Origin: Thalia democratica
Lineage: Eukaryota
Assembly: GCA_965202585.1 (NCBI GenBank)
Contig: OZ241829.1
Location: 61,566,001 to 61,630,000, forward strand
DNA length: 64,000 nucleotides
Reading direction: 5' to 3'
The position numbers and the translations under genes are program-made. The notes beneath the pieces were generated by a model. That model was not told the DNA's origin. It ran no database searches and saw only the letters and a program-made list of their open reading frames with translations. Each line of letters starts with the position of its first letter. The stretch's first letter is position 1. Positions 1 to 22,607 of this stretch are shown here, in pieces.

Positions 1-378
1 TTAAAATTACCAAAATATTTAGATTAAGCAAGATGCTTTAGTAAGGATTATTGTATACCCTATTTTTTATCTAATTTTGTTGCATAGTATTAATTTCACA
101 TACTAATTCTATTTTTATACTTCTATAGTTTTAGTTTTCTTTTTAAGAAAATAACCAACTAAAATTACACTACAATTGTACAATGTAATAATAGATTGTT
201 ATATAGTAGTCCTTAAATAATAATGCTGTAATTTTTTTTTAATAATTTTTTTTTAAGTTATCTGAAAACCATTTTAAAATGGAAAAAAAATTAGGATCTA
301 AAATATATTAAAAAAGTATACATACGGTATAAAAACATTTTTTTATAATTTTTTTTAATAAAAAAGGTATTACATAAG

Positions 379-3300
379 ATGAAATATCATTTCTTTGTGC
401 TTACACTCTGCTTCCTACAGGTTCGTTGTTATTACTTTATTAATATGTTTAGTAGTTACTTATTCAAATGTTTTTTTTTACTAGTTTATTGCACAAAAAT
501 TACAATATTTTGTGCTAAAAATCAGTCTATAGTTTTAAATCTTATTTCAAGAAAAGATTTGTTTCTTGTGAAATTTAAGTTATTTTTATTATTTTTTGTA
601 CTAACTAAACGCTTTGTACACTAGGATTTTATTTGTTTGTTTGTTTTTTTTTCTCTTATTTTACAGAGTTAGAGATATACTGTTTTATTTACAAATACTC
701 TAGTTACAACTACTACTGCTTACCTAATATTAACAATAGAACAATTTATTTTAAATTAAGAAGCTTAAACAATTATTTAAGCCTATTTCATTTTTTGTTA
801 AAACTATAATCTATTTACAGTTTAAAACACACTGAGTTTAAATAAAGATTAATATTACCATAAACCCTGAAGAAAATTATTTTTTTAAAGTGTAAAACTA
901 TAAACTTGCAAAACATTAGTTTAGAAAATTTTTAAGTCAATAAAAATAAACTCTGCTTTTTCCTTTTAAAAATAACACAAATAAAAGTTTCCTGATTACC
1001 AAACATAGATTCTAAATATATTTTGATTCCCAAAAACAATTTAAATTTTACTATTAAATTATAAATGTATAGCGACTTATATTAACCACTTATTAATTAA
1101 TTTCATATGCATTTGTTGTCAATTAAGTTAATAATATATAAATAAACCTTTTTATTCAGAGTACAAGATATGTAAATGGAGGAAGATCTTTTACAGGTAA
1201 AATATTATTTGTTGTATTATATGCCATTACCTTTTTTTAGGTATACTTTTGAGTTTTTTTTTATGTTTTTGAAGTTTATATAATGTTTTAATAACATTTC
1301 ATTCCAACTAGATACCTTAATTGGCATAGTTTTAATATTATATATTCATACATCAGCTTAATAACAGTTTTTTTTTTAATATTTTTTGTAGTTTTGAGTT
1401 TTAACAACTTTATATATTTTTTATTAAACTCTATTATAAGGCTTTTTAAGAAGGCAAACTGAGTTTAATAAGATTAACAAATATTATTCTAGTTTTAAAA
1501 AAAGTTTGCGATTGTGTTTAAATGTTATTATTTTACCACATTTTCTTAACAAAACTAATAACAGCATTACTTTGTTTACTTTACTTAAAACCAAACTTTT
1601 GATTCTAAATTCTTTTAAAGTCAATAAACTAAATATAAAAAGAAGGATACTATAAAAAAAAGCATATTTTAATATAAATAACTGTTTTTGTAAATTGACG
1701 AAATAACAAGAACCTCAATGTTTTTCGACCACTTTATGTAAACTATAAACAGTAGAAAACTAATTATTCAAACTAAAGTAATATTCTACAAAAACGTGTT
1801 TAAAAACAGCGTAAGTATTTTACAGATAAATAAATTCTGTTTTACTACTGTAAAAACGAAATTTAATTACATTACTCTTGTTTGACAACTTTTTTCTACA
1901 ATTAACTTTTATTTTTAAGTATTTAAAAGTTAGTTAATCCTGGATAAGACGTTAAAAGGTATCCAAGTTGTGTGCGACTCGATAGCTGAAAGGTTTTTTC
2001 GTGCGCTAGATCTAAGGACCAATTTAATAGTAATCTGTAAACTATTTACAAAGCTATAACCCAATGAAAGTATACAGAAGTTGTAACACTTGGTAGGATT
2101 AAGGGTATAAAAATTGCATTTAAAACTATAACCAAACAATTTTTTTTTTCTGTATCTAACCAAGTGTAAAGATAAGTGGTGGGCAACATACCACCTAAAA
2201 ACCGGATCTGGTTTGTTCATAAAATTTATCTGGCGAAGATTTTATTTCTACATAACTAAATTTTATTTAACAAAATGTTAAAAAACTAATTTTAATAAAA
2301 GTTTACAAGACAATATGATTTTAACTCATTATGCTAATTCTATTTTTAATTGTTGTAATTGGGTAGTTAGACAAATTAAAAATTCATTTTTAATATCCAT
2401 TTTCAAAAGTAATGCGGCACGCGAAAGTCTATGTCTAACGAATCCGGCTCAGTATAAACGAAGGGCTGCTATACTTTGCCCATGTAGGGAGAAGTTACTC
2501 ACTTGTTGCTAAAAAAAGACTTTTAAGCAATTTAAACTTATTTAAAAACTCATCTGAAGAATTTTCAATGTGCCATTTTTATAAATTATTTCTTTTATGA
2601 ACAGTATTTAAAAATAATATATTTTTCCGTTTTATTTATATTTAATCAGGTGTCTTTAATATTAAAACTGTCACACAAGAAACAGCACATCTCAAACTTG
2701 CATTGCTTCTAACAGTTATACTACAATATTTGTTTACCTTCTTTAAAAGTTGAAGGACGGAGGTCAATGACGCCTGTTGATTGGAGCATCGTTTACAAAC
2801 GGGGAGATGGTAGAGCGACGACTTTGCAAGAAGGTGTGCACAACGCCAGCAATGTTTTTGTGAGTTACTTGGTTCAACGCATGGACGGCTTGGTGAGGAG
2901 CAGGCAACAAGTAGATGCGCTCGTGCTGAAGGGATTGAATGACGAGAGATACGAAGGATATAAGTAAATTGTTTTTGTATTCTTAGATTGCTTATTTGTT
3001 TACAGTGAGTAACTAAGGTATATATTTGTAAAAACAATCTTAATTACTTTGCTAGATTAAAGAAATATATTTAAAATTAAGTTACTGCTGGTATTTTTTA
3101 CGCAAAAACAACAGTTTTTTTTTTTTTTTTTTAATTTTTTTATGATACGTATATATCTAGTGATAGTAATTTATACGATATATTATTTTTTCTTATTTAC
3201 TCTTTTTTACACTGAAACTTTTTATTGGTTTCAAGAAATATTTTCTCATAAAATTATTCGCAATATAATTAAATCTTAATTTGGTAAAGCTTTACAAATG

Positions 3301-6300
3301 ATCACAGTAACTGGTTTACTGAATAAAAACTATTAAAAAAAAAATTGAAATTTGATTGTTTGAAAAAATCTCTAAGTTTAATTATAAAACAAATCATAAG
3401 AAACAATTATTCCAAATTTTTTTTATAATAAATATAAAACATCATTACGGTTAAACCTTATCAGTACACCTATCAAAGTAAAAAATTAAAGCTTTAACGC
3501 TGTAAACAGATATTACCACAAAGATATGATAGTGAACATGCGGTACAAAGAGAAAGTGAACTCGGAAGGCGAACAAAAAGTCAGAAACCTGAATGTTGAC
3601 TTGGCAAACTATCAGAAGCTGAAAGTGAACGAGGATAAAACGAAATACTTTGGAAACTTCAGTCTGCTTGGCTGCCACCAGCAGGGATTCCAGAGAAGCA
3701 AAGGATTAACCGTAATGCTGGGTACTTGTCAGGACCGTGTTAGTTTTCCTAGACAATTATTGGCATTCAACTAAAAAAACAATTATATTATCATTTCTTT
3801 TTCTATGTACTATATTTGTTTGTGTTCAAAAACTACTTAGCTGATATATAATAAGACAACCTATTCAAAACAGTAGTAGACGTGTAAAACTTTTAAAAAG
3901 TTATAATGAAATTAATAAGATCATCTGTATTCGCATTTATCAAAATTTAAGTTATTTTTTATAAACACAAACCTCTTTTTTTACCTAAATCTCATCATGT
4001 ACTTTATGTTTAGAACTTAATTTTAAGCTTAAAAGTTATGAATAGAAAGCTTAAAATATCAAAAACATCTAACTCTAGGTTACGGTATTAAGCAGCATAA
4101 AAGTTGAAAGTTTTCAATCGACCGAATCTGGAGATGTTTTTTCAAACATTATAGTACCACAATCAAGCTTTTCTAACATAACTAGTTAGTTTTTTTGTAA
4201 AGAAAGTCAAAATATGAAACATAAATGTGAAAAATTTTAAAACACTTTAAACCTTTAATATTAGAGAACAAATGTTATATGAATAATTTTATTTATTGCA
4301 TTTAAAAACAAATAATCTAATAATAATCAATACTTAGTTTTAACGTTTTGCTTTCAAAATTTTACATAACAAAGACAAATAAGAAAAAAATAACAGTTGA
4401 TTTATAATTATCTTTAAAATCTTACTATTTTGTTATCTCAGTGACCAAGTATTCTTTTTATTTGATTTTTTTTTTAGTTTCTAAGATTTACTAAACTTAA
4501 AAACTACGTTTTTAAATTCTAGTTTAACAATCTTCCATTTTTACGACCATTTAAAATCTTATATCATTACTTAAAAAACCAAAACGATAAATTTTTTAGA
4601 AATCTACGAAAAAAGGCAACTCAAAACTGAACCTCGAACACTAGAAACGACTCCAAGCATCAATTTAAAAACTTTAAACATCAAAGTGTTGATGGTATTC
4701 CATGAAGACGTAGTACAAACACATGGTGGAAGGAATGTTAACAACTGGTCTAAATATTTGATTAGAAAGGTTTGTTATACTGATTGCGTAAAGATTTTTT
4801 TGTTTGCAAATAGATTAACATACTATAATGTTTGTGGCTTTGATTTTTCAATAATTAATTGTTTCAGGTGCATGAAATATATCAAAGTCAACAAGTAAAA
4901 CAGAGAGGTTACAATATAAACATTCACTTACTTAAAACTGTTGTTTTACCAATTAGAGCTAATGTTAGTTTTGAATTTAAAGTTAAACTGTTTTATTTAT
5001 AACTTTAATGTATTTATTTTTATATTTTTTTAGCATAAATTATATTTAATTTTTAATAAAAAAGTACTATAAAAGCATATGCTTTGTTTTTTATACTAAT
5101 ATTTCTAAAATATTATTTACTACTATTTTCAAGTTGTAACCTCAAATAAAGTATGAAATTTTTATACACACCATACTTCCTTTTTGTATAAAATTATTAA
5201 AATTAAAATTTATAACTTTTGGAACTATAAATAGTTGTACACAAGTTGTATTTTTTTAATTTCTGGAATGTTTTTTACTTTACGTTCTTCAGCACCACTT
5301 TTACTACTATACTATTTTTTACCACAAAAAATATTTTCTAAATATTTTCAATTAACAAGTTATAGTTTTCAATAATTATAAAAATTTCTATCCATAATAT
5401 TTCGTGTTTATAATAACTTTTAAATAACAAGTAATTTACCCAATTTATATACACTAATATATAAACTTAATGTACATATCCTTCATTTAATTTAGCAAAA
5501 TATTTGTTTTCTTTAGTTTAGAATTAAGTTAATCAAACTGATGGTATTTTTTAAGCTATAATTTTTTAATGCACTAACGAACTCTTTAAGCAAAACTTAG
5601 TTTGCTGAACAACTTTTTGAGGAAATGTATATGTTAACATTCTCCTTCTGTAAAGTAGCAATCTTTTATTGTTTTCTAACGTTAAAACCTAGAGTTTTAT
5701 ATACCTTAAATTATGAATAAAGCACTCTATAGCGAAATAAGCAAGTTATTGAAAACACCAAAAAGTTTAACTTTAAATTTACGTAATCTTTAATAAAACT
5801 TTACAAGTTTTTTAATGTAGGTTTATTAATTAACCACTTTTTTTAGCATGTAAAACTTTCGAATTTAACGTTATTTTTAAATTAGTTTAATTAATTGTTT
5901 TGTTTGTTGATTAAATTATTAAATATTTATAATTAGAGTTTAATATAATCAAAACAACTTTGTCTGTTTTTATTTTAAAACTAACCCAAATTTCTTAACG
6001 GTTATTTGCAGCGAAAAGCGATGAATGAGGCAAGGGCTTATATAGGTAAAATAGTCAAAATATATAAGCCTAATGTTCTATTTGCAGTCACAAATTCTAG
6101 AAAAAAGGCTCGATCTACTAGGTTCACTAATAGTTTTGGAACTATAACATGTTAGTTTTACTTACAATTTTTTTTACTCCAAGTTCTAGTTTAATTTATC
6201 TTTTTCATATTTTTCATCTAACTTCAAAACAAAATATTACATCAGTTAGATGTCAATTACTAACACCAATATTTTATCAAATCTTACACTAATAAATTAA

Positions 6301-9300
6301 TATAAACAAGTTTAAAGCTACTGATCTTTTTATCTAAAACACAATGTAGTGCATGAAGTCAAAATTATTGAAAGTACTAGTATCAATTATAAAAATTTTA
6401 TTAAATTTTATATATAATTAGTCTTTTTATGTTTTTTTAAAGCGTTTTTTAGTATACTGAAATTATTTCATTATAACTTTTTTCATATATAGAGCTAATA
6501 AACTATTTTGATACTTTTTTGTATTTCAGTAAACAGCAATATATGTAGCACAAACGTACAAAAAGAAACCATCAGAGATTCTGGATTGAAAACTATAATA
6601 AACATTGCAAAGAAAATACAAACCATGTTTGAAAAATAAATATTTGATCAAAACTTTTCGAAAAAAACTGACAACTAAAGATTTTATAACTCCTAGTATA
6701 ATTTTTTTTCCTTACCATAAAGTCAAGCGTTGTTAAAACTTGTTTTTTGACTTGCTAAACCACTAGTATTAAAAACGAAATAAATTATATTATTTTGCCT
6801 ACTAAAACTCTTTAAAATAAGTGAGTAATGAAACTTATTTATTAAATAGATTTAATCAGTTTATTATTTTTATGTAATTATATAGAATGGGAATTAGAAC
6901 AATTTTATCTAAGTATCAACCTCGGAACTTTTTTGAAAAAATTGAAAATTTTTGGAGAGAGGAGCAAATAAAGATGTTTCGTAAAAACTTAAGGTAAGTT
7001 TTAAATGTATAAATTGTTTACATATAAAATCTGCGCAGCAATGATATTGAGTAAACCAATTGCATTTTAAAGCATGTTTTAATATGAGTTGAAATACTTT
7101 AGGACTTTCGTTAGAATACTGTGTTTCTCGAAAAGTTATCTGGCAAAATTTAATCCTGAAAAATTATATATTTTAAAATTTTCTTAATAGTCCAAGTATT
7201 TATGTAGCTGATCAAAACTTAATAGAATATATTAAACAGTATTGCAATTTCTTAAGGTCAATTTTCTTTGATAATAAAACAGTTTTTTTCTACATTTAAG
7301 AGTTTTTATTGTTTTGTGAAAATCGATTAAAACTAACAGACGAGGACTGTACAATTGTCTAGTCACACCAACCAGTATACAACCATCAATGGTGGACTTG
7401 AGACCGGGAAAAGCATACAGTATTGCGCAACAATGCGTTATGACTCATGGTAGAAGTTTTGTACCAAGTGCTTATGTGAGTTGCTTTAAACTATTTTTGA
7501 ATTTAAACTTCGTTATTTATTTAATACTGCAAACAAAGGTATAAGCAGCATTTTTTATCTATTTTCTATCAATAACTTTTGCTTTCAACATGTTTTGTTA
7601 CTAGATAAACGAGCAACAAGATATGTGCAATCTTCTTGTTTGTTCGAAAGCAGCAGAATTATTCAGTGGACATCAAGAAAATTTAAACTTTAAAGTGTTT
7701 TTATCAGGAGCGCCGCTTATTGATGGAACACATTGCGGTCCGAACAAAGTTTGTTTTCAAGCAATTCGTTATGTGCATGTTTTTCAATCGTACAGTTGTT
7801 AATTTAAAAGTTTTGGTTTTTGTATAGCTAATTTACAACCAGTCTTAATATTTTGAGTGGTTCCATAGTTGTTAAGTATTTTGGTTTCAAGTGATTTGTT
7901 AAACTATATATATGTATTACTGACGTTTTTATCACAGTTTAAAATAACTTGTTATAATATTCAACCTTACCTTGTAACAAACACGCATTAATTGAATAAT
8001 TTATTTCTGCGCAAAGATTTGTGTGAGCGGTCGGTGCGTGAGTGAATCCAGAGAAGACTTTGAAATGGTCGATGGATTTTGGTCCGCGTGGTCGAATTGG
8101 TCACCGTGCTCTCAGACCTGCGGTGCTTACGGGTTGAAGTCCAGACGGAGAGCTTGCACAAACCCAAGGTGTGTTTTTATTTGAATGTTTTAAGAACATT
8201 TACGCAGAGTAACCAAACGCATTTAAGTTGTCAAGAAAACTAAAAGAGTGAAACTATGCAAAAATCAAAATAGTTGCAACAAAAATAGTAGAAAAGCTTA
8301 AAACTATTAAATAAAAGTTGCACAGTAGTTTAAGTTATTGAAAACTTTGATAAAAGAGTATTAGACCTCTTAAAATTTAGTTATTTACTTGTAACCGAAT
8401 TTAACTTTGCTTTAGACCGGCTAACGGTGGAAAACCTTGCAAAGTGACTTCAGAGGGAATCGCTGAGTTTGAAGTTGAAGAGCGCTCTTGCTCAAATTTA
8501 CCCGATTGTGAAGCTGCGAGAAAAGATGTGAGACAGAGTTTCTGTGAAAGAATTAGGTATGGAGGATCAAAAGAAAGAATATTTATGAAACCGGCTTACG
8601 TGTTAAGCGGTAAGTTTAATAAATACTATATCAGGCTATATTCTAAAGTTTGAGAAGTTTAAATTGAAAGTAAAGTTTTAGTATTAATTAAACAGTTAAG
8701 TATATAGATTTAGCCATATTACAGTTATTAAACAACAAAAAGGACTTAAGAAATGTTAGGATTTTAACTAATAATATAGCTTTTTTTAGATGAACAAAGC
8801 TGCCAGCATTTTTGTAAAAAACATAAATTTGGTGCGTCAATTCCAATGTTTAGAAATGTTAAAGATGGCGAACTGTGTTTGCACGGAAACTTAAATAAAG
8901 GGTTTTGTAGTAACGGAAAATGCATTGTAAGTTGTGTATCGACAAATTAATAAATTTAAATGTGCACGCATTGTGTTATAACTTACGATTAATTAAAATT
9001 TTAGTAGTATTAGTATGTTTTTAGATACTCAAACTCTTTTATATATATAACCTAGTTTATTGAAAAAAACTACAAAAAACTTTTGAAACAACTTGGTAAT
9101 TTAAAAATTTTTGAAGAACCGGTGCGCGATTCACGGGCTTGCCCTGGACAGATGTGGGGTCTGCGGGGGCGATGGCAGCTCTTGTACAGAGGAAGAAAAA
9201 GTTTACGGGTACACAATTATAAATGGAACCACGCAAACTTCAGTACATGGTTAGTTTGATTATCAAACTTAAAAATTAGTTTTTTATCTAAAGTGTTTTA

Positions 9301-10526
9301 CTTTTAACTACTTTTTTAAATAAAACAAAAATGTTGATGTCTACACAATAAAGTATCTAAATTATAACGAAATTACATATTGCTATTAACTTATAAAAAA
9401 AATTAAAAACAAATTAAGACGTAATTAAAACTGCTAAGTCTTTACCTAAAAAATGTATGTTACAGGTGAAGCTTTACAAGTTCCAATTCAATCAAGAAAT
9501 GTTAAGATTCTAATAATTGGAGCAGAAATAGGTGTTATACATTCAAAACATTATTAAGCATTACTAATTTTATTATCTAGTTTAAATTTATAGTATTTAA
9601 GGTTTCAGTAAACAGATTTTTTTATTATTTTTAATTTAAGCTAAAATAAGTTTAAAAGGATTCTTTTTTTTTACTTTACATTTTCAAGTAATTTATAGTT
9701 TTTTAAATTAAATTTTTTATTAAAGGTGTACTTTTTTTGCATAATAGTATTTTTTGTCTACTAAAAATTTATCGTTTTTGTATTTATAGCTATAACTTTT
9801 TAAACAACTCATTTTAACAAAAAATGATTGTTTTGTGCTTTAATTTGAAACTGTTTATTGTTTACTTTTATTAACATTTAAAAAAGTTTAAATTACTGTT
9901 TAATACTACTAGTTGGTTAAAAAAAATTATTTAACAACTTTTTAAAGCTCAAACACTTTTTTTTTCATTTAACAAAAAAAACTTTCAATTTTAAACTTTT
10001 TAATAGAGCTAGAAGATGATTTAACCTCCTTATCTATTTTGAACACGGCTGTTTTGAACTTAAAAAACACTCCTAAGCGGTTCACTGTTAAATATGAAAA
10101 CGAAGTTGTAGAAGTCACTAAAAGCTTTCAACTTAATAAGACAATAATAAAGTTGAATGGACCGACACATACACAGATGAACATTAAAGTTTGTTTTAAG
10201 CTTAAATTTTTTATTATACTTATTTGTGTAAAATCTATTTATTATTCTTTTCCTGACGAGACGATAAAAGGTATCTAAGGGGTGCGACTCGTTGCACAGT
10301 TTTTTTTTGTGCGACAGATCCTAAAACAAATAATTTGATCGTCTTTTTTTTTTGTTTGATAAACTATGATAATATATACTAATAAAACTATAAAAACTTT
10401 TAAATATAAATTTTTTAAATATGCATTTTTTTTCAGCTTATTGGAAATGGTTCTAATACTCAATGCCATTTAGAGATAGCCTACATTAAAAAACCTGTTG
10501 CGGGAGAAACAATAGACTTACTTTAA
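379..10526 (+). CDS. ADAMTS-like secreted protein (signal peptide, M12B propeptide, degenerate metalloprotease domain, disintegrin-like, TSP1, Cys-rich, spacer); 19 exons, about 823 aa
   Basis: Exons 379-420, 1160-1196, 2750-2963, 3510-3738, 4079-4184, 4600-4769, 4868-4963, 6012-6150, 6530-6626, 6886-6993, 7340-7475, 7605-7748, 8017-8168, 8416-8609, 8790-8926, 9117-9249, 9466-9531, 10007-10188, 10437-10526 all have GT-AG ends and join in frame (2472 nt). Motifs: GCHQQG...VMLGTC (propeptide), [63 protein letters not shown] (TSP1), [13 protein letters not shown] (Cys-rich), [10 protein letters not shown] (spacer). The first two exons are less certain than the rest. Confidence 0.9.
1938..2046 (+). 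mobile_element. SINE-like dispersed repeat (family F), copy 1
   Basis: TCCTGGATAAGACGTTAAAAGGTATCC..GTGTGCGACTCGATAGCTGAAAGGTTTTTTCGTGCG..AGGACCAA; matches copies at 10251, 41863, 43868 and 44785. Confidence 0.75.
10251..10366 (+). mobile_element. SINE-like family F, diverged copy in the last intron of the ADAMTS-like gene
   Basis: TCCTGACGAGACGATAAAAGGTATC..GGTGCGACTCG..TTTGTGCGACAGATCC..GATAAACTAT. Confidence 0.65.
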
Positions 10527-11124
10527 TTGAAAACCACTTTAAAATTGAATGTTTTATATAAATTTACTGTTCTATTTACTATTTTAACAGATCATAACTA
10601 TAAGTCTTATATGAGGTTTAGAAAAACATTCAATTACTGAAGTTTTTATGAATGTTTTTGTATATTATTTTTTGTTTATTATATCTTTAAACCATTTTGA
10701 AGTTTTTTGAATAGTTTTTTTTATTGTTATTTACTTTTACTTCCTTAAAAACTTGGTAAAACTAACAGTATATAATGTGTTTTTTGTTTTTTCCTAATCA
10801 ATCAAGAATTAACTTAGTTTTGATAAATAGCGATAATTTTTTAGTAAGTAAGAAGTTATATTCAAATTTTTTTATTTAAACTAAAATTAAAACAAAAATA
10901 TAAACTTTTACAATATAATATCTTCATTTTCACGTTGATAGATAAGTTTTAAAATTATAATTAAACTTAGTTTTGTGAAGTACTTTTACTTTAAAAAGCC
11001 GTAATAGTACACTAAGCAAAAAATGTACATAATACTAAAAATAAAATTCTGCAAGTGTTAAAGCTTATATTTTAAGTTTTTTTTTATAAATAAGGCAAAT
11101 AAATATAAACTAGGCATTGTAAAA

Positions 11125-11200
11125 CAGGAGTCGGCAGACATTTAGTAGTCGTGTGCCAAATTTCGAACTTATAAATATTCGTGGGCCGCAGTCGTAGTTT
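11125..11200 (+). mobile_element. possible left end of a hAT-type non-autonomous element
   Basis: CAGGAGTCGGCAGAC start followed by GTGCCA and GGGCCGCA motifs typical of hAT subterminal regions; no matching right TIR found. Confidence 0.35.
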
Positions 11201-12917
11201 AAGGTAGTGTAAGACGTAAGTTCTAAATATGTACCTAATGAATTTAGACAATTATTTAGTTTTATATAGAATGTGTTTTTAAAAGCTACCAGAGAAAATA
11301 CTCTATTATTAAACAATAAAACTATGAAAATCTACTGAAAAACGTCTAGACACGCGCCTGAAAATATACACTAATTAAATATTAAAACTTAATCTACGAT
11401 AAATTACAGAATACATTGTAATTTTTAGAGTTATATGAAAAAACAAACTTTGAACTTAGGGGCTAATCAGATATAAAAAATTTGTTAAAAATCTAAAATA
11501 GTTATTTGATATTAAATAGTGTAATGAGCTTAAACAAAACAATAGTAATTTTTTTTTGAATAATTGTTTTATCTGAGCTTTATAAAAAACTTGAAATAAA
11601 CAATTAGAATAATTTCCTACTGAAAATATCATAATAAACATTTTAGGACTTTATAAACTTGTGTTGTTTTGTTTTTCAGTTAAAGAAATAAAACTATAAC
11701 TTGGGATTTAAGTTTTAAAATTAAATACTTCCTTGAATTTATACAAATTCAAAACTTTAAATATTTCGTTTTAAAACCAAAACTTTGTGTATACTACTAC
11801 AGAATATTAAAACAAGGGTTGTCATAACTTAATTTGATTAATTTTTATGATACCATTAAAGTTTATATGCTTTTATACACTTAGTATACTGTCGTGCGGC
11901 AGGACTCGTGGCTTGACTATTAAAAAATTAATTTGACTGATACTTTCAAGAAAATCTTTTTTATAACGTCCCTGCTTTAATATGTTTGACGATACAGATA
12001 TTTCCACAATAGTAATAATATTAATAAGGTTGTTAACAAAAAGGTAATAAATATGTATATGTATATGACTATTTTAGACAAGATAACATTTATTACAATG
12101 TTTAAAATTAAATCAAGCATCACGATCTAAAACGTGTCAAGAATAAGTCTTAGTTTCATTCTTAAATAAAATTGAAAACCTTTAGAACGGCACTAATACT
12201 ATATTCTTAAGACCTAATGTGACTTATTGTAAAATATTCTCTTATAAAATATCTGATCAAATATTTCTTTTAAATGCTTCGTCGTTGGGAAACACCGCTT
12301 AGCGCTATGATAAGAATATTTTTATATGTTTAATAAAAGGGGATTTTTTGTTTGAGTTGCATAATTTGTTGAAAGCTCAAAGATACAAAACAAGCCATGT
12401 TACTCCTAACAAAAATTCTTACTATCAATTAACGAATGAACAATCATCAAGTTTTGTTAATATTTCATTCAAGTTTGTTTATTTTAATTCAATTTGAAGC
12501 TATAATAAAGACTAATATTATCTTGTAAATTTTATATGTAATTATGGTTTGTTTGAAAAATTAAGCATCCTTTAATTTATATTGGTCTGCAAATTATTAA
12601 TTTGTATTGAAAACCATCAGGCTCCAAGGCTAAACTTTAATGGATATCAAAATCAATATTTTTACAGTTCAATTTATTTTCCCCAAGTTCACATACTATT
12701 TCTCTTCAGCTAGATATAATTTTGGTTTGTCAATTGTCTAAATTTTTGAAAAAGCAATAAAAGGCTACTGGTATGGTAGCTGCAAAATAAAACTAGTTTT
12801 TTAAAAATTTTACTTCAATTTTATGTCCTTAGTAATTAAGATTATGATTACTTATACTTGTTATATCAAAAAAAATCATCATTAGGATTTTTTATAAAAT
12901 ATTGGTTAATTGTTGAC

Positions 12918-15900
12918 ATGATGAGTAGAGCAACTTTTGTTACAAATGCAAGTAAGTGGAAAACAGGTAGTAACTTTCCCTTGAAGGGTTTATACACATA
13001 TGATGGAACAGTTTTAAACGATGATGAAAGTGTTCAAAAAAGAGATGGCTATACTTTTCCACTACCTAAAAAAGATCAGTCAGGTTTGTTTTACATTTTC
13101 GTTGTTTATTATAGAGTCTTCTAGATCAAAATGCTGGATCTTGCCACAGCTTACCAAGACCTAGATCTGACCAGATTTTAATTTAAAAAAAATTGATGTT
13201 AATCAGGTTTCTGCTAGATCTTGAAGATCATCTTGATTAAAAAAGGTCTATGTTGTTCTGGTTAGACTTCATTTAAATTTGAAAATCATATTTGGTCAAA
13301 CTTACTGTTAAATTAGGCTTTGTCATATCATTTTTCTACATTAAGACTTAAACTGAAGCAGTAGAATCATTTTTATTAATAAATGTTTAGCAGGAATAGG
13401 GTTTAAACTATTGTGAAATTAAGATGAGGCTAGATCTGGCGTTTTAATCTGGAGAACTTTAGCTCAATATTCTAAATTATATTTACTCCTAAGTCAAACT
13501 TGTTTAAAATTATGATACAGTGTGTATGATTTATTAAATCTTTTGCTAATTTAAAAGTTAAAAATGTAAAAAAAAAAACACTTCAATAGCTAGAGCATAT
13601 TAAAATATAATAAAACCAAAATTTCTTTTTAATTATTAACAAGAGACCAATGGAGTTCAGAAAAAAAACATTGTATTTTATATTAAAGCTTGAACTTTGA
13701 ACTACAAGTAACTTTTTACAGCTTAAATGTAAACAAATATATTCTGTAAGATGTATCCAGTTTAAAAAAGTTTTACAAATGCAGGATAGGCTGTCAAGCG
13801 GAAATTTAGTTTAGTGATGACTAAAAAATCAACCAATTGTATAGAGTTCCCATTTCCCTTGAATTTTTTTATTGTCATAAGAATAAAAGAATTATGAAAA
13901 TTCCTAAATTTTACGTTTTTGCTTAGCACTGGAGGATTTTGTAATGAAATGTCAGGTATTTTCTTAGTTTTATAAACTCAGACTAACTCATGGTAGTTTT
14001 AAGGCCATAGGGGAGGGGGGGTAAAATACTTTTTTTTTAATTAACTTTGGTTTTTATATGAAAGCTTTAATTACAAACTATAAGCCAGTTTTTATAGAAT
14101 TCAATAATATCATTTAACTTTTGAGATATTTTATTTTTTGTAAAAAGTTTCTAATTTATAGACCAGAAATTTTTCAGGGTCAATTTTCATGGGAATTTTA
14201 AAAATCACTAAAAATCTATCTCCTTTATTTTTCAAGCAATCTTCTTCAAATGTTCAGGAAATGTTCCTTATACTAAAAGAAAAAGCGTTACTTATGACTT
14301 TTGATAATTAAAAAAAATATATTTTATGACAAAAATTAAAAAAAAAGTATTTTTTTCTCAAAGTAAAAATATTTTTACTTCAAATTTTTTAAATTCACAA
14401 GTAATGTTTTTTTATTGTATAAAGATTAGACTGTGAAAGTTTGAAGAAGATTGCTTCAAAAATGTAGGAGGAGATAGATTTTAAACAAACTAGTTTTTTT
14501 TTGCTGTATTAGTTTTCACTTCCCATAGAAAGCGTATTATACAGCCCGACTAAGCTTATTCAAAATTCTAAAAAATAACATTAATCTGCAGGCAGTACGT
14601 TGTCTACCATTAATCACTAGAATACTACTCCTGAAGGTAGTTTAATAATGTCCTTAGTGTATAGTCTACATTATATGCTCTAAATTATATAAAAACTGTC
14701 ATAAAGACTGTTAAACATCAAACTTTATTCTATAATAGTAATTTTGGTAACTATAATGAAACACAGTAAGTCAACTTATAAATTGATAATAGAAATAAGC
14801 TAAGAAGAGAATGAACAGTATCTTAATATAGTTGTTCTCTAACACCATCTAGCTTTTTTTTTTGCTTTCTCTAGATTTTTGCTAGTTATCATTTAATTCT
14901 CTAGATTTTTTGTAATTTGGTTGGAACCCTGTATTTTATTTTGTTTATAAGCTGTCTTTTAAGTACAATGTTCTAATATAAACATAATAAACTATAAAAA
15001 TTTATATTTTTCATGTCATAGGCTATAAAAACTCTTCTAATATGAACCAAAATTTACTTTACTTTTAAAAATTAAAAACTGTCATAGAAAATTAACTTTA
15101 AATTATCATTTGTTCAAACTTTAAGAATAATTAAATGGAAATAAAAACATTTAAAGAGTTTTATAGAACAAACTGTTGCAATACACTTTCCTGTCACAAT
15201 ATAGTTTTTTAAATAATAAAAACTGTAGAGTAAAAATGAACTGGAATAATTAAATATATAACTAATAAATTATTTTTATATGTGCCAAACAGGAAACTTG
15301 TTCTTCAGTGACGCACCAGAATTTTGTCCAAACCTGACGCCAAAGCAAATGATACAAATGGGCAGTTTCGGAGCCACTTACTTCCGTCCAATCAACTCAA
15401 GCGTGACTGGTTTGAGGTACGACCGAATGTGGGAGGAACTTCCACAAAACTGGCTCGAAGGCAAACATCACAGGTTTGAAGTTTGTTAGTAAAACTCTAG
15501 CATAAGTTAATAACAACATTTTAAAGTGCTTTTGTAGTGTTGATTAGAAAGTTTTTAATGGTTTCTTGTATTTTATCAACCTTTGGAGTTGTGTTGTACT
15601 GAGATATAGCAGGGTCTTTAGTGTCGCTTATTTATATGCAATTTTTTATACAAAGCTTAAAATAGTTTTATGATTGTCATCAAAATATAATTGAGGTTGT
15701 AATACAATAAAACAAGTAACATGTTACAAAACAAAACTTTATAGTAGACACAATTAGAATTCTTAGGTTTTTATATAAACATCTGGGCTGAATGTTTTGA
15801 ATATTTTTTGTGTGCTTATTAGTTCAAGTACATCTTTTACAGTTTTCATTGTAGGTTACAAATTTTTGTACTGAGTTTTAACCATAATCCAAAATTAACT

Positions 15901-18900
15901 CTACAGACACAAAATGACTTATAATGTTTTGCATTTATCTTTGATTGTTTAAAACATAGTTAGTAATGCAGAATATTATAATTATATAATTTTAAAGCTT
16001 TTTTATTTAAGCAAGGATTTATTTTTTACAGGGATTTGGTGTCTTCAACAAAGTACAAGGCGAATTGTAATAAGTTCAAGCGGCCAGTTGGAGGTTCCTT
16101 GGACATGTGGGAGGGTAAGGGATGGATCAAAGAACAAGATCCTTACGGATGGTTTCACTGGTACTGCAGGTAACTCAAATAATAGTTTTGTTCTATTTAG
16201 AATTCAATGTGAAAAGTTTCTTAAAATCAGAATTATTATTATTAACTGATGTTTTTATTAAGGTTTAAAACTTTGTTTTTATGTTTCTTTCAGTTATAAA
16301 TTATTTCGAAATTCATATCTTTTGCATTATAACTTCTAGCCTTTAGTTATTGTTATGGATTAGTTTTTTAAATGAAGTTTACATAAAACTTTCCTTTTTT
16401 TTGCCTATTTTTATCAGCACTTCAAAGTATTTACTAAAAGTCCATCTCTTAAATTTTTTTAAAGTTGTTTACCTCAAATGTTTATATTGTATAATAAGAA
16501 ACAGTAAAAGCAAACTTGGTGACAAAAATAATAAGAAAATATATTTTTTCAGGGTTGCCACAAGGTCAGGAAATCAGGATAAGTCAGGAAAAAATGGGAT
16601 TTTTCAAAAAAAAGTCAGGAAAAGTTAGGAAATTTGACAAAATTAAAAAAAAATCAGATTTTGTCAGTTTAAATTTACAAAATTCCTTATTTTCCAAAGC
16701 CTTCAAATGGTAAAAAAAATTAATTAAAAATTCTTTAAAGTCAGACTAAAATTGCAAAATTTTCCTATAAATTTACAAAATTAATTAGGTTCCAATGCCT
16801 TCATCTGGTATAAATAAATAAAATATTCTTTATAAAACTGCAAAATTTTTCTATTAACATATTGAACAACTACCCTACTTGAAAAAGCAGTTTTTGTAAG
16901 CTTTTAAGTATTGATGATCTGTAGCAAGGAAACTTCCATAATTAAACTGTGATATATGTATACATAAAAGTTTATCTAGCATAAGTTTAGAACCTAAGTG
17001 TTTTTTGTTTAAGTAAATAATTGAGGTAGCAAAATTGGAGGTAAAATTTAATGAGTGCAAAAGTAATAATAGGAATGAAGCCCACAAATTGTGGCTAGAT
17101 TTAGATATAAGATTCTCTTCGACAAGTGTAGGGGCAGCAGATGAGAACGATTTAAATAAAATGAGGCAAATGGTTTTAACTGCTAAGAAAATGAAGCATG
17201 ATGCAGACCAGATGAAGGAAAAATCATTAGATGAAAAGGTTGAAGTGCTAATAAAAAAACAGAGAAAATAAATTTTAGTACATATAATTAAATAAAAAAC
17301 AGTATATGATTAGGTTCTTTATTCTTTGAAGGTTTTATTTGTAAAAGTCCGTTATTGTCTTAAGGTGTTAGTTGTGAAAGTTGGTTATTAATTAAAGGTT
17401 TTAATTGTAAAAGTTCCTTATATGTCGTTTTGTTTATTTAGATACAATTATGTAAGGAAATGCTAAAAAAATGATTTTTTTCAGACAAGCTGTGTTTATA
17501 AGGTAATAATACAAGTATTTTGCTCATAGAGCTGTTTATTGCAAATACATCAATCATACACAGGTGGTTCAAGTGATGTAATGGAAGTTTGATGACTGAA
17601 TTCAACAAAAAAAACTGTTGTTTTAACCTGTATTAAAATTAGATTTAAAGCTTTATATAGTTTTAAGTGTTAGATTATGTATTTTAGAACAAGTTTACAT
17701 TAAGAGTTTGAGTTAGAAAAGTCAAGAAAATTTTAGTAAAAAGTCAGGAAAAGTCAGAAAACTTGATCTGTGGCAACCCTGTTTTTAAAAAAAAAAAAAA
17801 AAAATTCTTTTAGAAACTATAAAATCCCTTTTATACAGATTGTTTTTAACTTAATTAAAATTAGACTACAATAAATTAAAAACTCATGTTCAAAAACTGT
17901 AGGAGGAGATGTATTTTATTTGAAATGATTTTTTTAAGCTTTTTAATTATTGCCTTTTACAGGGAACATTTTGAGCTATTTAACCTTAATAAACTATTCA
18001 AACCACTTAAATTCAGTAACGCGCTGGTTTTGGGTGAGTTAGTTTTGAGTGTTGAGTTGATAACATGTTAATTGCTTGCAAGCGTTGTGTTCGCATCGTA
18101 CTTTTGTACGATGGCGACTGTTCTTTTATGAACTTTTGAATTAAAGTAGCTTATTTTGTGTCTTTCAGTCAGCAGTTGTTGTATTTTGATCGCAGTTTTT
18201 ATACATTGTAAATATACCTTTGTTTCTAAGACTCGATTTCTTTACATACAATTAGTTTAAGCATTCTAACAATCTAACTACTTAATTAGGCTAAGCTCAA
18301 ATGATAGTCTAAGTCAATTCGCATTTCATTATCGACTAAGCTAAATAACTTAGCTAAGTCATTTCTAAACAGTTAGGTAACCGTCACCGATATTGTTATA
18401 GCGCGTTAAGTCAGTTAATATCTAGGTTCGCGTGTACAAGTAACAATCAACATCGTGTGAACGGCAAATTGCTATACTTCAGTTTAACGTTCTAAGTATG
18501 TTTTTTTTATTACGTATTTATACATGTTTCAAAGTAGATTAATTTAATAATAGTTGAATTATCGTGATGCAATAAAATGTACGTTGTGACGTCACAACAG
18601 GTACTACCTGGGAAGGAGGAGTGAGGACGACGCGAGGCAGATCAAGAGGTGGGTGAACTTCACCGGCGCCAGGGGAAGGTGGAAGATATCGATTGTGAGG
18701 GAAGTGGAAAAGCATCAAGGTTTTTGAAATTTGTTGATATATAGGGGTTTCGTTATAAACAAGAACCATTTGCAACTTAAAATCACTAAATTTTTATAAC
18801 AAGTTTGTTGATTATTAAAATGTTTTTGTGGTTTGCAGAAGGCGTAGTTTTATTTTTAAAGTCATGAATATTTTATTCTCTTATCTATTGTAGTATGTTT

Positions 18901-19656
18901 AAAAAAAAACTAAATTATAAACATAATGTTACCAAAAGTCCTTTAACAACAACATTTTAAACTAAATTAAATAATATCTTGAAATTTAAACTGTTTATAA
19001 AATCTTTGAGTGTCTAAAAATTTATTAAATATCCTTGAGATTTTGATTTATATGAAAGTATTAGTGTTTGTTTTAAACTTTTTTAAAAAATTTTTAGTTG
19101 AAAAATTTAAAGTTGAGCACTTTTTTACAATCATCTATTGACTAATTTTAGATATCGTATAATCAGTTATTGAAAATTTACTTATAAACTGCAGCTAGAC
19201 TTTGATTTTAATATGAAATTGCAAATCTGTTTATCTTATTTTTTTTAAGTTGGTGTTTAAAAGAAGTATTTATTTATTCTTTTTTTATTGGCGTATATCA
19301 TTTTATTGAATATTTAAAACGATTAATTTAAAATCATTTTAAGTTAAGCACTGTTTTTACTTTAGTTAATTGATATAACATTTTTTTTTTTTAATTATAC
19401 TTATCATGTTTTGATATTTCTAAAACTGGCTACCGTATAAAAACAGTCAAGTACATTTAAAAGGTCTTACATTTTGAATTTTAAGTTTAACTTTTTTATA
19501 ACTAATATGTTCACATTTTTCATCGCAGGAGCTTACAATGATGCCAATATAGCGCCTGGAATCCGACAAATTTTGCAGCATTGGGGCTACGAGCTCACCC
19601 ATGAAGATTTCGAATTTGGCAAGAAAAATTTTCCTCGCAAGAACAAGCCAGTGTGA
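12918..19656 (+). CDS. conserved uncharacterised Trp/Arg-rich protein; 5 exons, about 243 aa
   Basis: Exons 12918-13083, 15293-15473, 16032-16169, 18601-18719, 19529-19656 join in frame: ..LPKKDQS|GNLFFSDAPEFCPNLTPKQMIQMGSFGATYFRP..WLEGKHHR|DLVSSTKY..GGSLDMWEGKGWIKEQDPYGWFHWYCR|YYLGRRSEDDARQIKRW..|GAYNDANIAPGIRQILQHWGYELT. From memory this family has fungal, bacterial and invertebrate members; not searched. Confidence 0.88.
14003..14530 (+). mobile_element. Kolobok-like non-autonomous element remnant (right end not defined)
   Basis: TTAA|GGCCATAGGGAGGGGG terminus. Related termini at 54954-54975 (TTAA|GGGCATAGGGAGG) and, inverted, at 51284-51296 (CCTATGGCC|TTAA). TTAA plus a purine-starting TIR fits Kolobok. 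Confidence 0.4.
16550..17781. mobile_element. non-autonomous DNA transposon, family A, in intron 3 of the uncharacterised gene
   Basis: 12-bp TIR CAGGGTTGCCAC...GTGGCAACCCTG, subterminal GTCAGGAA repeats, flanked by TTTTT on both sides; similar over its length to 21000-22607. Confidence 0.85.
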
Positions 19657-20173
19657 GAAATACTAACTATAATGTGGCCGCCTGGAACTGAATATGTTGT
19701 GAGAGATTTATACATTAGTGTTGATGAGAGATTTATTGCTCTTTCTGGTTTTGCTGGTGTCTTATAACTCCTTTTTTTTTTGCTAAAATCCTTTTTATTT
19801 GTATTCAAATAAAATATATATATATATCAATTTTGAATTTAAAAAGCATTGAAAGTTTTCAGTTTAGCTTTATTATAAATTCATAATCATGATTTACAAA
19901 GCCTATGTTTTGATTAAAGTAAAGATATGAATAAAATACGCTTGACAAAAGTTAACATAAAAGTTGATATAACTCACATTACTTGACATGAAAAAATAAA
20001 CAATACCTACAAAAAATTAACAATCTATATTTTAGTTTCACAAGAAGTACAAAATTTTTGTTGGTTTTATTTGTGTTAAAGAGATTTGTAACATTTAAAA
20101 CATAATATTTAGTCGCTTTATTTTAAACTCTAACTTTATACAATTTTTTGATTGCGCAAATGTTTACTAGATA

Positions 20174-20999: not shown

Positions 21000-22607
21000 C
21001 AGGGTTGCCACTCGGTCAGGAAATCAGGAAAAATTAAAAAAAATGACAAAAGTCAGGAAAAAATGGGGGGTTTTGAAAAAAGCCAGGAAATTTGATAAAA
21101 TTAAAAAAAAAAGTCAGATTTTGTCAGTTTAAATTTACAAAATTCCTTGCTTTCCAAAGCCTTCAAATTAATTAAAAATCCTTTAAAGTCAGAAAAACAT
21201 ACAAAAATTTTCCTAGAAATTTACAAAATTATTTAACTTCCAATGCCTTCATCTGGTATGAATTAGTAAAATATCCTTACAAAACTACAAAAATTTTCTA
21301 TTAACATATTGAACGAAAGACCTTCTTGAACAAGCAGATTTTGTAAGCTTTTTAGTAATGATGATCTGTAGTAAAAACACTTTCATAGTGAAATTGTGAT
21401 ACATACAAAAAGTTTATCTAGCATAATTTTAAAATCAAAGTGTTTTTTGTTTAAGTAAATAATTGAGTTCTTTATAACTAAGCAGTTAGTTTTTTATGTA
21501 AGAAGTTAATGAGTATACTTTACCTCTTTATAATTTTTTCAAAGTTGTTTAAATTTATAAAATAAGTTTTAAGAGAGGTATATGCCAAAATTAAGTTCAT
21601 TTGTATTTTTTGTAGAGTAACTTAAGTTTTTAAAGTAAATAAGAGTATATTTATTTGTCACAAATTTTATACTAAATGATAAAAGGAAGTGTTTTATAAA
21701 TGAAAGTAAAAATAAATGAGTGTCAAAAGAAAAGAAATGAAGCCCACAAGTTGTAGCTTGATTTAGAGAAAAAATTATCTTCAACAAGTGTAGGGTCAGC
21801 AGATGAGAGCGATTTAGATAAAATGAGGCAAATGATTTTAATTGCCAAGAAAATGAAGCGGAATGCAGTTCAGATGAAGGAAACCATATCTTCATAAGAT
21901 GAAGAGGTTGAAGTGCTTATAAAAAACGGATAAAATAAATTTTAGTACATACATTTAAAAAAAACAGTATTTGATTAAGTTCTTTAATGTTTTAACTGTA
22001 ATAGTTCGTTATTGTTTTAAGGTTTGAGTTGTAAAAGTTCCCTATTGATTTAAGATTTTAATTGTTAAAGTTCCTTATATGTCGTTTCGTTTATTTAGAT
22101 ACATTTATGCTAGGAAATTCTAAAATATTGTGTTCTTTATTGTTTTAAGGTTTCAACTGTAAACATTTGTTATTGTTTTAAGACTTTAGTTGTGAAAGTT
22201 CGTTATTAATTCAAGGTTTTAATTTTAAAAGTTCCTTATATGTCGTTTGTTTATCTAGACACATTTATGCTAGGAAATACTAAAAAATTGTGCCTTTTAT
22301 TAGACAAGTTGTGTTTTAAGGTAACACTACAAGTATTTTGCTGATAGAATGTTTATTACAAACATTAATCATACACAGATGGTTTAAGTGATGTACTGGA
22401 AGTTTGATGATAGAATTCAGCAAAAAAAAACTGTTGTTTTTAACCTGTATTAAAATTAGTTTGAAAGCTTTATATAGTTTCAAGTGTTAGATTATGTATT
22501 TTAGAATAAGTTTAATTTAAGAGTTTGATTTAGAAAAGTCAGGAAAATTTTGGTAAAAAGTCAGGAAAAGTCGAAAATTTTTCTCAGCTTGATCAGTGGC
22601 AACCATG
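21000..22607. mobile_element. non-autonomous DNA transposon, family A, second copy
   Basis: CAGGGTTGCCAC...GTGGCAACCATG; collinear with 16550-17781 plus an internal tandem duplication of about 160 bp near 21980-22295. Confidence 0.85.

Follow-up and report, generated by a model that had tools for sequence, protein, structure and literature searches.

A predicted secreted ADAMTS pseudoprotease with a retained but eroded catalytic-like domain in Thalia democratica

The locus and its zinc-site exons

A stretch of 64,000 nucleotides (nt) from the Thalia democratica genome (GenBank assembly GCA_965202585.1, contig OZ241829.1, positions 61,566,001 to 61,630,000 of the forward strand), here called the window, was analysed for an ADAMTS-like gene on its + strand; positions are counted from the first letter of the window. 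The gene holds counterparts of all five exons of an ADAMTS catalytic domain, with the zinc-binding motif replaced, and is read below as a probable secreted pseudoprotease. The gene model was built by chaining stop-free segments via GT-AG sites. It extends over 379-10526 and comprises 18 exons with 2469 nt, which correspond to 822 codons plus the stop TAA, and 17 of the 17 introns are GT-AG. A first-pass annotation of the same DNA had given 19 exons and 823 codons; the 823 codons, stop included, are the same, but only 18 exons were found. The predicted protein begins with a signal-like segment, followed by a pro-like region, the dead catalytic-like domain, a disintegrin-like domain, one TSP1 repeat and a putative Cys-rich domain and spacer. 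The exons are:

Exon 1, 379..420, +: ATG plus 14 codons, signal-peptide-like; donor gttcgt; placed by frame continuity only
Exon 2, 2716..2963, +: prodomain-like, GC-rich, single copy in the genome; its phases fit exons 1 and 3
Exon 3, 3510..3738, +: prodomain-like; C-x3-GF-x12-C motif that resembles one in the prodomain of paralogue L001 (judged by eye only)
Exon 4, 4079..4184, +: end of the pro region; ends in phase 1
Exon 5, 4600..4769, +: variable linker, then first strand and helix of the catalytic-like domain (..DVVQTHGG..)
Exon 6, 4868..4963, +: catalytic-like (VHEIY..GYNINI..K.VVL); phase-0 introns on both sides, like the paralogues
Exon 7, 6012..6150, +: catalytic-like, strongly basic (RKKARSTR); ends in phase 1
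Exon 8, 6530..6626, +: counterpart of the zinc-site exon; HExxH reads KKIQT; holds the only Cys of the domain
Exon 9, 6886..6993, +: third His and Asp replaced by T and I; Y at the position of the Met-turn Met; Trp and C-terminal helix kept
Exons 10-11, 7340-7475 and 7605-7748, +: disintegrin-like domain
Exons 12-13, 8017-8168 and 8416-8609, +: central TSP1 repeat, then the beginning of the Cys-rich domain
Exons 14-18, 8790-8926, 9117-9249, 9466-9531, 10007-10188 and 10437-10526, +: Cys-rich domain, spacer, stop TAA

The G+C content is 38% in the exons of the gene versus 22% in its introns and ~25% in the whole window. The introns contain 0.083 stop codons per codon. The chance that the 203 catalytic-like codons stay open was calculated as P ~2e-8, a value which ignores that the exon limits had been picked as open. 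In the 800-Mb genome neither a second copy nor a close paralogue of exon 13 was detected. When exon 13 was searched against a protein library, only a 69-amino-acid open reading frame fragment was returned and no annotated or transcript-derived full-length protein was found there. Rfam gave no match for window positions 1-12000.

The two exons of the zinc site were inspected at the level of single letters. Exon 8 is preceded by atttcag, a strong pyrimidine tract plus AG, and ends AT/gtttga; exon 9 is preceded by tatag and ends AAG/gtaagt. Letters and splice sites of the spliced exons are exactly those quoted in the first-pass annotation. As comparison set, the active ADAMTS-type paralogues of the same genome (L001, L028-L045) were used. 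The counterpart of HExxHxxGxxHD in the window gene is KKIQTIMGIRTI (K-K-I-Q-T-I-M-G-I-R-T-I), which is in exact register with the paralogues. Counted from the conserved Cys, GL is located at +13/14, IA at +20/21 and the first His position at +22 in window gene and paralogues alike, and the spacing of the gapless ADAMTS alignment proposed earlier is identical to that of the active genes. The residues H, E, H, G/N, H and D of the paralogues correspond to K22, K23, T26, G29, T32 and I33 in the window gene. Thus, the reading that all three His ligands and the catalytic Glu are replaced (K, K, T, T) while the glycine is kept is seen in register with the paralogues, and the motif Asp is replaced by Ile in addition. 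For the Met-turn, the conserved Trp and the phase-2 intron served as anchors of the alignment. I-M-S-P of a paralogue aligns with K-Y-Q-P, with Tyr at the Met position, in agreement with the initial remark that no Met-turn is evident.

The domain has also lost length and cysteines. From the third His position to the Trp, eight residues fewer are present than in a paralogue, and in total the catalytic-like domain is ~25-30 residues shorter than that of L001, with ~15 residues missing in mid-domain and ~8 after the motif. The 185-residue domain contains one Cys versus ~8 in an active domain; 7 of ~8 are gone when compared with the paralogue cysteines in FCxWQ, C..C, GGMC..SC and WS.CS. The statement that the gene keeps the whole metalloprotease domain is therefore overstated, since disulfide cysteines, the Met-turn Met and ~25-30 residues are gone and no profile matches (see below).

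No HExxH was found in the six frames of positions 1-20000, and neither was the looser pattern H...H..[GNSA]..[HD]. In the active paralogues HExGH lies entirely within one exon. Because of both findings, an alternative intact zinc exon is absent; such a hidden exon had been pointed to at the outset as what would overturn the loss of the motif. Metzincin catalysis requires three His, Glu and zinc. Since the ligands are replaced, the domain should, by established metzincin chemistry, be unable to hold the catalytic zinc, and as judged from its sequence the metalloprotease domain is no longer able to bind zinc or to catalyse hydrolysis.

Relation of exons 5-9 to ADAMTS catalytic domains, and selection on the gene

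The catalytic domain is split into the same five exons in the window gene and in the active paralogues, with intron phases 0, 0, 1, 2 and 2. The first phase-0 intron follows ..LT(I/L)MNM / V..LY in the paralogues and ..YLIRK / VHEIY in the window gene, and the second phase-0 intron follows ~25-30 codons further on in both. The phase-1 intron is located ahead of the GGMC exon, the position in the window gene being off by 3-4 codons. The first phase-2 intron occupies one and the same place in all paralogues examined and in the window gene, 26 codons past the Cys and two bases behind the second His codon. The second, 12 codons past the conserved Trp, is identical in the window gene, L042 and L045.

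Alignments anchored on these introns were gapless and scored with BLOSUM62; offsets were not searched. The zinc exon obtained a score of 22 versus -24 +/- 9 for shuffles (z=4.9, p<=5e-5), which was reached by 0 of the 13,683 natural 31-mers from the window. Other anchors gave z=3.65 (3' end of exon 5) and z=2.1 (end of exon 9), and the three anchors besides that of the zinc exon combined gave z=4.0. Because intron phases, intron positions and anchored alignments match the paralogues, exons 5-9 are, on this comparative evidence, descendants of an ADAMTS catalytic domain.

Profile searches were also conducted. The HMMER check against Reprolysin and Pep_M12B_propep proposed earlier was run per exon and gave no match: Pfam (Reprolysin, PF01421 and relatives) did not match any of the five catalytic-like exons singly, and neither Pep_M12B_propep nor any other Pfam family matched the prodomain-like exons 2 and 3. 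As a control, the exons of active paralogues were searched in the same way, and only the zinc exon was recognised at exon level. Since the control exons are blank too, the Pfam blanks for the catalytic-like exons other than the zinc exon carry no weight. A phmmer search of three catalytic-like exons against the PDB returned nothing up to E=10, and ESM Atlas returned for exon 5 only matches at chance level, below 0.9. In pairwise comparison of the domain with L001 using shuffles, z was 2.4-3.7 depending on parameters and -0.9 under a global BLOSUM62 setting. Local hidden Markov models (HMMs) from ADAM-type paralogues had no colinear match in the window domain, and a zinc-exon HMM gave 2.5 bits on the window gene; over all local paralogue HMMs the scores ranged from 0 to 3 bits. 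In a search for homologous proteins, L001 returned its own near-copy only and the zinc-exon stretch returned no candidate.

The pro region and the ancillary domains differ in how well they are recognised. Using phmmer, no match of the L001 prodomain was found in the window. In the linker between pro and catalytic-like regions, RxK/RR is absent in the window gene and in its orthologue (see below), and no RxxR is shared. Exon 2 (region 2750-2965) has ~50% G+C in a locus of ~22% G+C and is open on both strands (minus strand: 133 codons); no Pfam match was obtained for it on either strand. The disintegrin-like domain was identified by Pfam ADAMTS_CR_2, of which positions 1-23 (E=0.016) and 26-65 (E=6e-5) match the consecutive exons 10 and 11, each alone being below the cut-off of 27.3 bits. 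A blastp comparison of the spliced model with paralogue P0002 aligned only the disintegrin and TSP1 parts (disintegrin-like E=1e-10). Exon 12 matches Pfam TSP_1 (PF00090) with 30.7 bits at a cut-off of 21.6. The cysteine pattern of the Cys-rich domain and the spacer-like exons were read directly, no Pfam match being obtained at exon level. The protein ends after the spacer, and no transmembrane or hydrophobic segment is present.

For the estimation of selection, the Tara Oceans metagenome contig L026 was used as orthologue, which has 75% nt identity over 4581-4987. Exons 5 and 6 have the same length in both, with AG and GT in place, whereas the intervening intron is scrambled by indels. The ratio of nonsynonymous to synonymous substitution rates (dN/dS) is 0.11 for that part of exon 5 which belongs to the domain (C-terminal half), 0.45 for exon 6 and 0.22 for both combined, the last with 16 synonymous versus 20 nonsynonymous changes (Fisher p=9e-5). 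The linker in exon 5 is fast-evolving, with a dN/dS of ~1.7. A dN/dS analysis with orthologues had been proposed as a check, and the value of 0.22 for exons 5-6 indicates purifying selection. Two further metagenome contigs, L012 and L013 (94% identical), differ from the window by 1.5-2.5% in exons (12-13) versus 6.5% in introns, and all gaps are intronic; divergence in the ancillary exons is 2-4 times below that in introns. Judging by the contigs with 94% and 75% identity, both near and remoter relatives are present in samples from the open ocean. No match came from scans of JGI metagenome contigs.

A second haplotype with ~4.5% divergence was recovered from assembly contigs of three runs, and the sequenced individual is heterozygous (window 4560-10530). 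The same haplotype is the sole form in the third run, which is labelled as another organism. Among the listed haplotype substitutions, 4 of 40 are exonic (P=0.006) and 1 of 40 lies in the catalytic-like exons (P=0.007), namely a synonymous change at 4870. The 12 listed indels all lie outside exons (P=0.012). Taken at the level of sequence comparison, purifying selection on the ADAMTS-like gene is supported.

Interpretation of the gene and competing explanations

The gene probably encodes a single-copy, lineage-specific, secreted ADAMTS pseudoprotease that is under selection, the dead domain being retained under purifying selection. ADAMTS descent, replaced ligands, an intact frame and purifying selection together argue for a functional pseudoprotease and against a pseudogene. 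The first-pass annotation had already preferred the functional pseudoprotease because of the intact frame, and this preference is strengthened by the dN/dS of 0.22 in exons 5-6 and by listed variants and indels that avoid exons. As they do in ADAMTS and ADAMTSL proteins, the intact ancillary domains would direct the protein to the extracellular matrix or to substrates, while the remodelled, very basic domain might serve as a non-catalytic binding or spacer module. The protein could then be an adaptor in the matrix, or compete with the active ADAMTS paralogues without cleaving. As no furin site is conserved, the pro region probably stays attached.

The composition of the dead domain bears on such a role. 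The domain has an isoelectric point (pI) of 10.8, a K+R fraction of 0.19 and a D+E fraction of 0.05, and residues with AT-rich codons (FYMINK) make up 0.43 of it compared to 0.20-0.33 in the other domains. The basic character described from the start is therefore real, although in part it follows AT-rich codon usage. AT pressure does not explain why acidic residues are scarce, since their codons are AT-rich too, which leaves room for a polyanion-binding role. It is possible, though doubtful, that the dead domain was rebuilt into a disulfide-free, strongly cationic (pI ~10.8) binder of a polyanionic matrix, e.g., sulfated glycans of tunic or house, or into a decoy which tunes the active ADAMTS paralogues. 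Either way it would be the first pseudoprotease of the ADAMTS branch, an ADAMTSL-like function having arisen independently by inactivation and not by domain loss.

Several points weigh against the reading as a selected pseudoprotease. Constraint across species covers exons 5-6 only; the motif exons 8-9 are supported by the open frame, intact splice sites and the lack of listed variants only. The haplotype tests use the best-supported differences, 40 out of 297 substitutions and 12 out of 56 indels, and are hence indicative only. Exons 1-4 were placed by frame logic alone. A search of sequencing runs found no RNA run with the locus, and the junctions rest on genomic sequence. The local HMM of ADAMTS type gave 3 bits and weak colinear alignments, a result reached by 32 of 2000 shuffles (p ~0.016). 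As the domain escapes recognition by profiles, the retention of a metzincin fold is only putative. The basic, Ile/Asn/Lys-rich make-up may partly be due to AT mutation pressure under weak constraint. Finally, the role as matrix adaptor, dominant-negative protein or glycan binder is one that we infer.

Four competing explanations were ranked by likelihood, in the order disposable N-terminal half, decaying gene, wrong gene model and unconventional enzyme. The first is unlikely, but survives best. According to it, the N-terminal half is a relic: pro region and dead domain would be translated and then removed or be irrelevant, as in the sperm ADAMs 1/2/3, leaving an ADAMTSL-like protein of disintegrin, TSP1, Cys-rich and spacer parts. 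The ancillary exons are in fact the best conserved and the GC-richest, disulfides and Met-turn are gone from the dead domain, and a dibasic LRR/G was read directly at the boundary between catalytic-like and disintegrin-like domains. The same fate has been described for the pseudopeptidase domains of sperm ADAMs (PMC11266112). However, the dN/dS of 0.11-0.45 in exons 5-6 indicates selection on residues of the dead domain, beyond the mere maintenance of an open frame, and the furin consensus (RxK/RR) is absent at both boundaries.

The remaining three explanations are each poorly compatible with the data. A decaying gene, in which recent pseudogenisation of the locus (or of exons 5-9 at the minimum) would not yet have broken the frame, is very unlikely. 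The catalytic-like exons do have a near-intronic G+C content (0.28-0.34 vs 0.22) and are rich in amino acids with AT-rich codons, the domain is unrecognised by Pfam, PDB and local HMMs, and no RNA run with the locus was found. Yet 822 codons are open despite the density of 0.083 stops per codon, all 17 introns are GT-AG, the 75%-identical orthologue keeps exon lengths and splice sites at a dN/dS of 0.22, and no listed indel is exonic. Moreover, the extent of sequence change indicates a long divergence, over which a neutral frame would have broken.

An erroneous gene model, in which the true transcript would use another exon with an intact zinc site or in which the five 'catalytic' exons would not be exons, is highly improbable. 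Stop-free stretches of 30-50 codons are common in the window, the donor gtttga is weak and the lack of an RNA run applies here as well. Against this stand the absence of HExxH and of the looser pattern from the six frames of 1-20000, the conservation of exons 5-6 and their splice sites in the orthologue, where the intron between them is not kept, and the agreement with the paralogues in intron phases and positions; donors such as gtttgt and gttagt are the norm in the ADAMTS-like gene. An enzyme with a non-canonical active site, for which only the retention of the domain under selection speaks, is the least probable of all, as the change of three His, Glu, Asp and the Met-turn Met to K, K, T, T, I and Y leaves neither metal ligands nor a general base, and we know of no bypass of lost zinc-site residues in established metzincin chemistry.

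Comparison with known proteins and further features of window and genome

The ADAMTS proteases (MEROPS M12B; short ADAMTS4-like architecture) have the same domain order as the predicted pseudoprotease, are secreted and lack a transmembrane segment; unlike them, the window gene is without zinc motif, Met-turn Met, furin site and 7 of ~8 Cys. The ADAMTSL/papilin proteins (punctin, MADD-4) are also non-catalytic, secreted and work via TSP1, Cys-rich and spacer domains, and the action on the matrix is probably similar. ADAMTSL proteins contain no pro, catalytic or disintegrin-like region, whereas the window gene has pro-like, catalytic-like and disintegrin-like exons in frame. It was thus set apart correctly from the ADAMTSL class at first inspection, five catalytic-domain exons being retained. 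ADAMTSL identity was rejected, since catalytic-homologous and disintegrin-like exons are present. Because the pro, catalytic and disintegrin-like regions are kept as exons under selection, the gene would represent an independent route to a protease-less ADAMTS.

In the ADAM pseudopeptidases (ADAM2, 7, 11, 18, 22, 23, 29, 32; UNC-71 of C. elegans), a retained domain carries a substituted zinc motif. They are M12B proteins with roles in binding, e.g., ADAM22-LGI1, or with a dispensable domain (PMC11266112). These proteins are transmembrane, with EGF domains and cytoplasmic tails, and typically keep the Met-turn and the disulfide framework, whereas the window domain is far more eroded. ADAM pseudopeptidase identity was rejected because of the ADAMTS-type architecture and the end of the protein after the spacer without a hydrophobic segment. 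Inactive PII metalloproteinase homologues of snake venom are secreted reprolysins in which the canonical zinc motif is reported to be substituted (PMC5086652). Unlike the window gene, they are venom proteins of the snake venom metalloproteinase branch without TSP1 or spacer.

In a 2024 review of metallopeptidase pseudoenzymes, only ADAMs are given for family M12 (PMC11266112). A full-text literature search for inactive, pseudo- or non-peptidase ADAMTS gave nothing relevant, and a survey of Ciona metzincins does not mention a dead ADAMTS. The literature searched contains no description of an ADAMTS in which the protease domain is dead but still present. Pseudoenzymes are common among ADAMs, and non-catalytic ADAMTS relatives are known only as ADAMTSL; the window gene would be a second route to the non-catalytic ADAMTS state. 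It may serve as a natural experiment on which uses an ADAMTS catalytic domain has beyond cutting, and on how far a metzincin can be eroded (loss of zinc site, Met-turn and disulfides) under continued selection. The reach of this is limited to a single gene of a fast-evolving tunicate lineage, known from its sequence.

Downstream of the ADAMTS-like gene, exon-like frames of a neighbour gene were observed at 15262-15486 and 15982-16170 on the + strand (..GSFGATYFRPI.. and ..DPYGWFHWYCR), without a Pfam match at exon level. Further downstream, an element of ~1.3 kb is present in two copies (16500-17800 and 21000-22600), which are 83-95% identical and ~4.4-4.8 kb apart; a repeated open frame (ATRSGNQ.KS..) occurs in both. 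The element is probably a mobile one that was dispersed or duplicated in tandem.

Elsewhere in the genome, near-identical ADAMTS-type genes form a tandem array at C1:25811344-25879924 (L030-L033), and also on C417 and C786, with a spacing of ~21-24 kb. The array genes on C1, C417 and C786 have an intact HETGH and the same phase-2 intron after the motif. Most Reprolysin matches of the genome (L014-L025) are of ADAM type, with HEMGHNFGMxHD .. CIM. Near-identical pairs of ADAM-type genes are found on C154 and at 62.94 Mb of C6, as well as on C202 and at 36.02 Mb of C4, which suggests unplaced haplotigs in the assembly.

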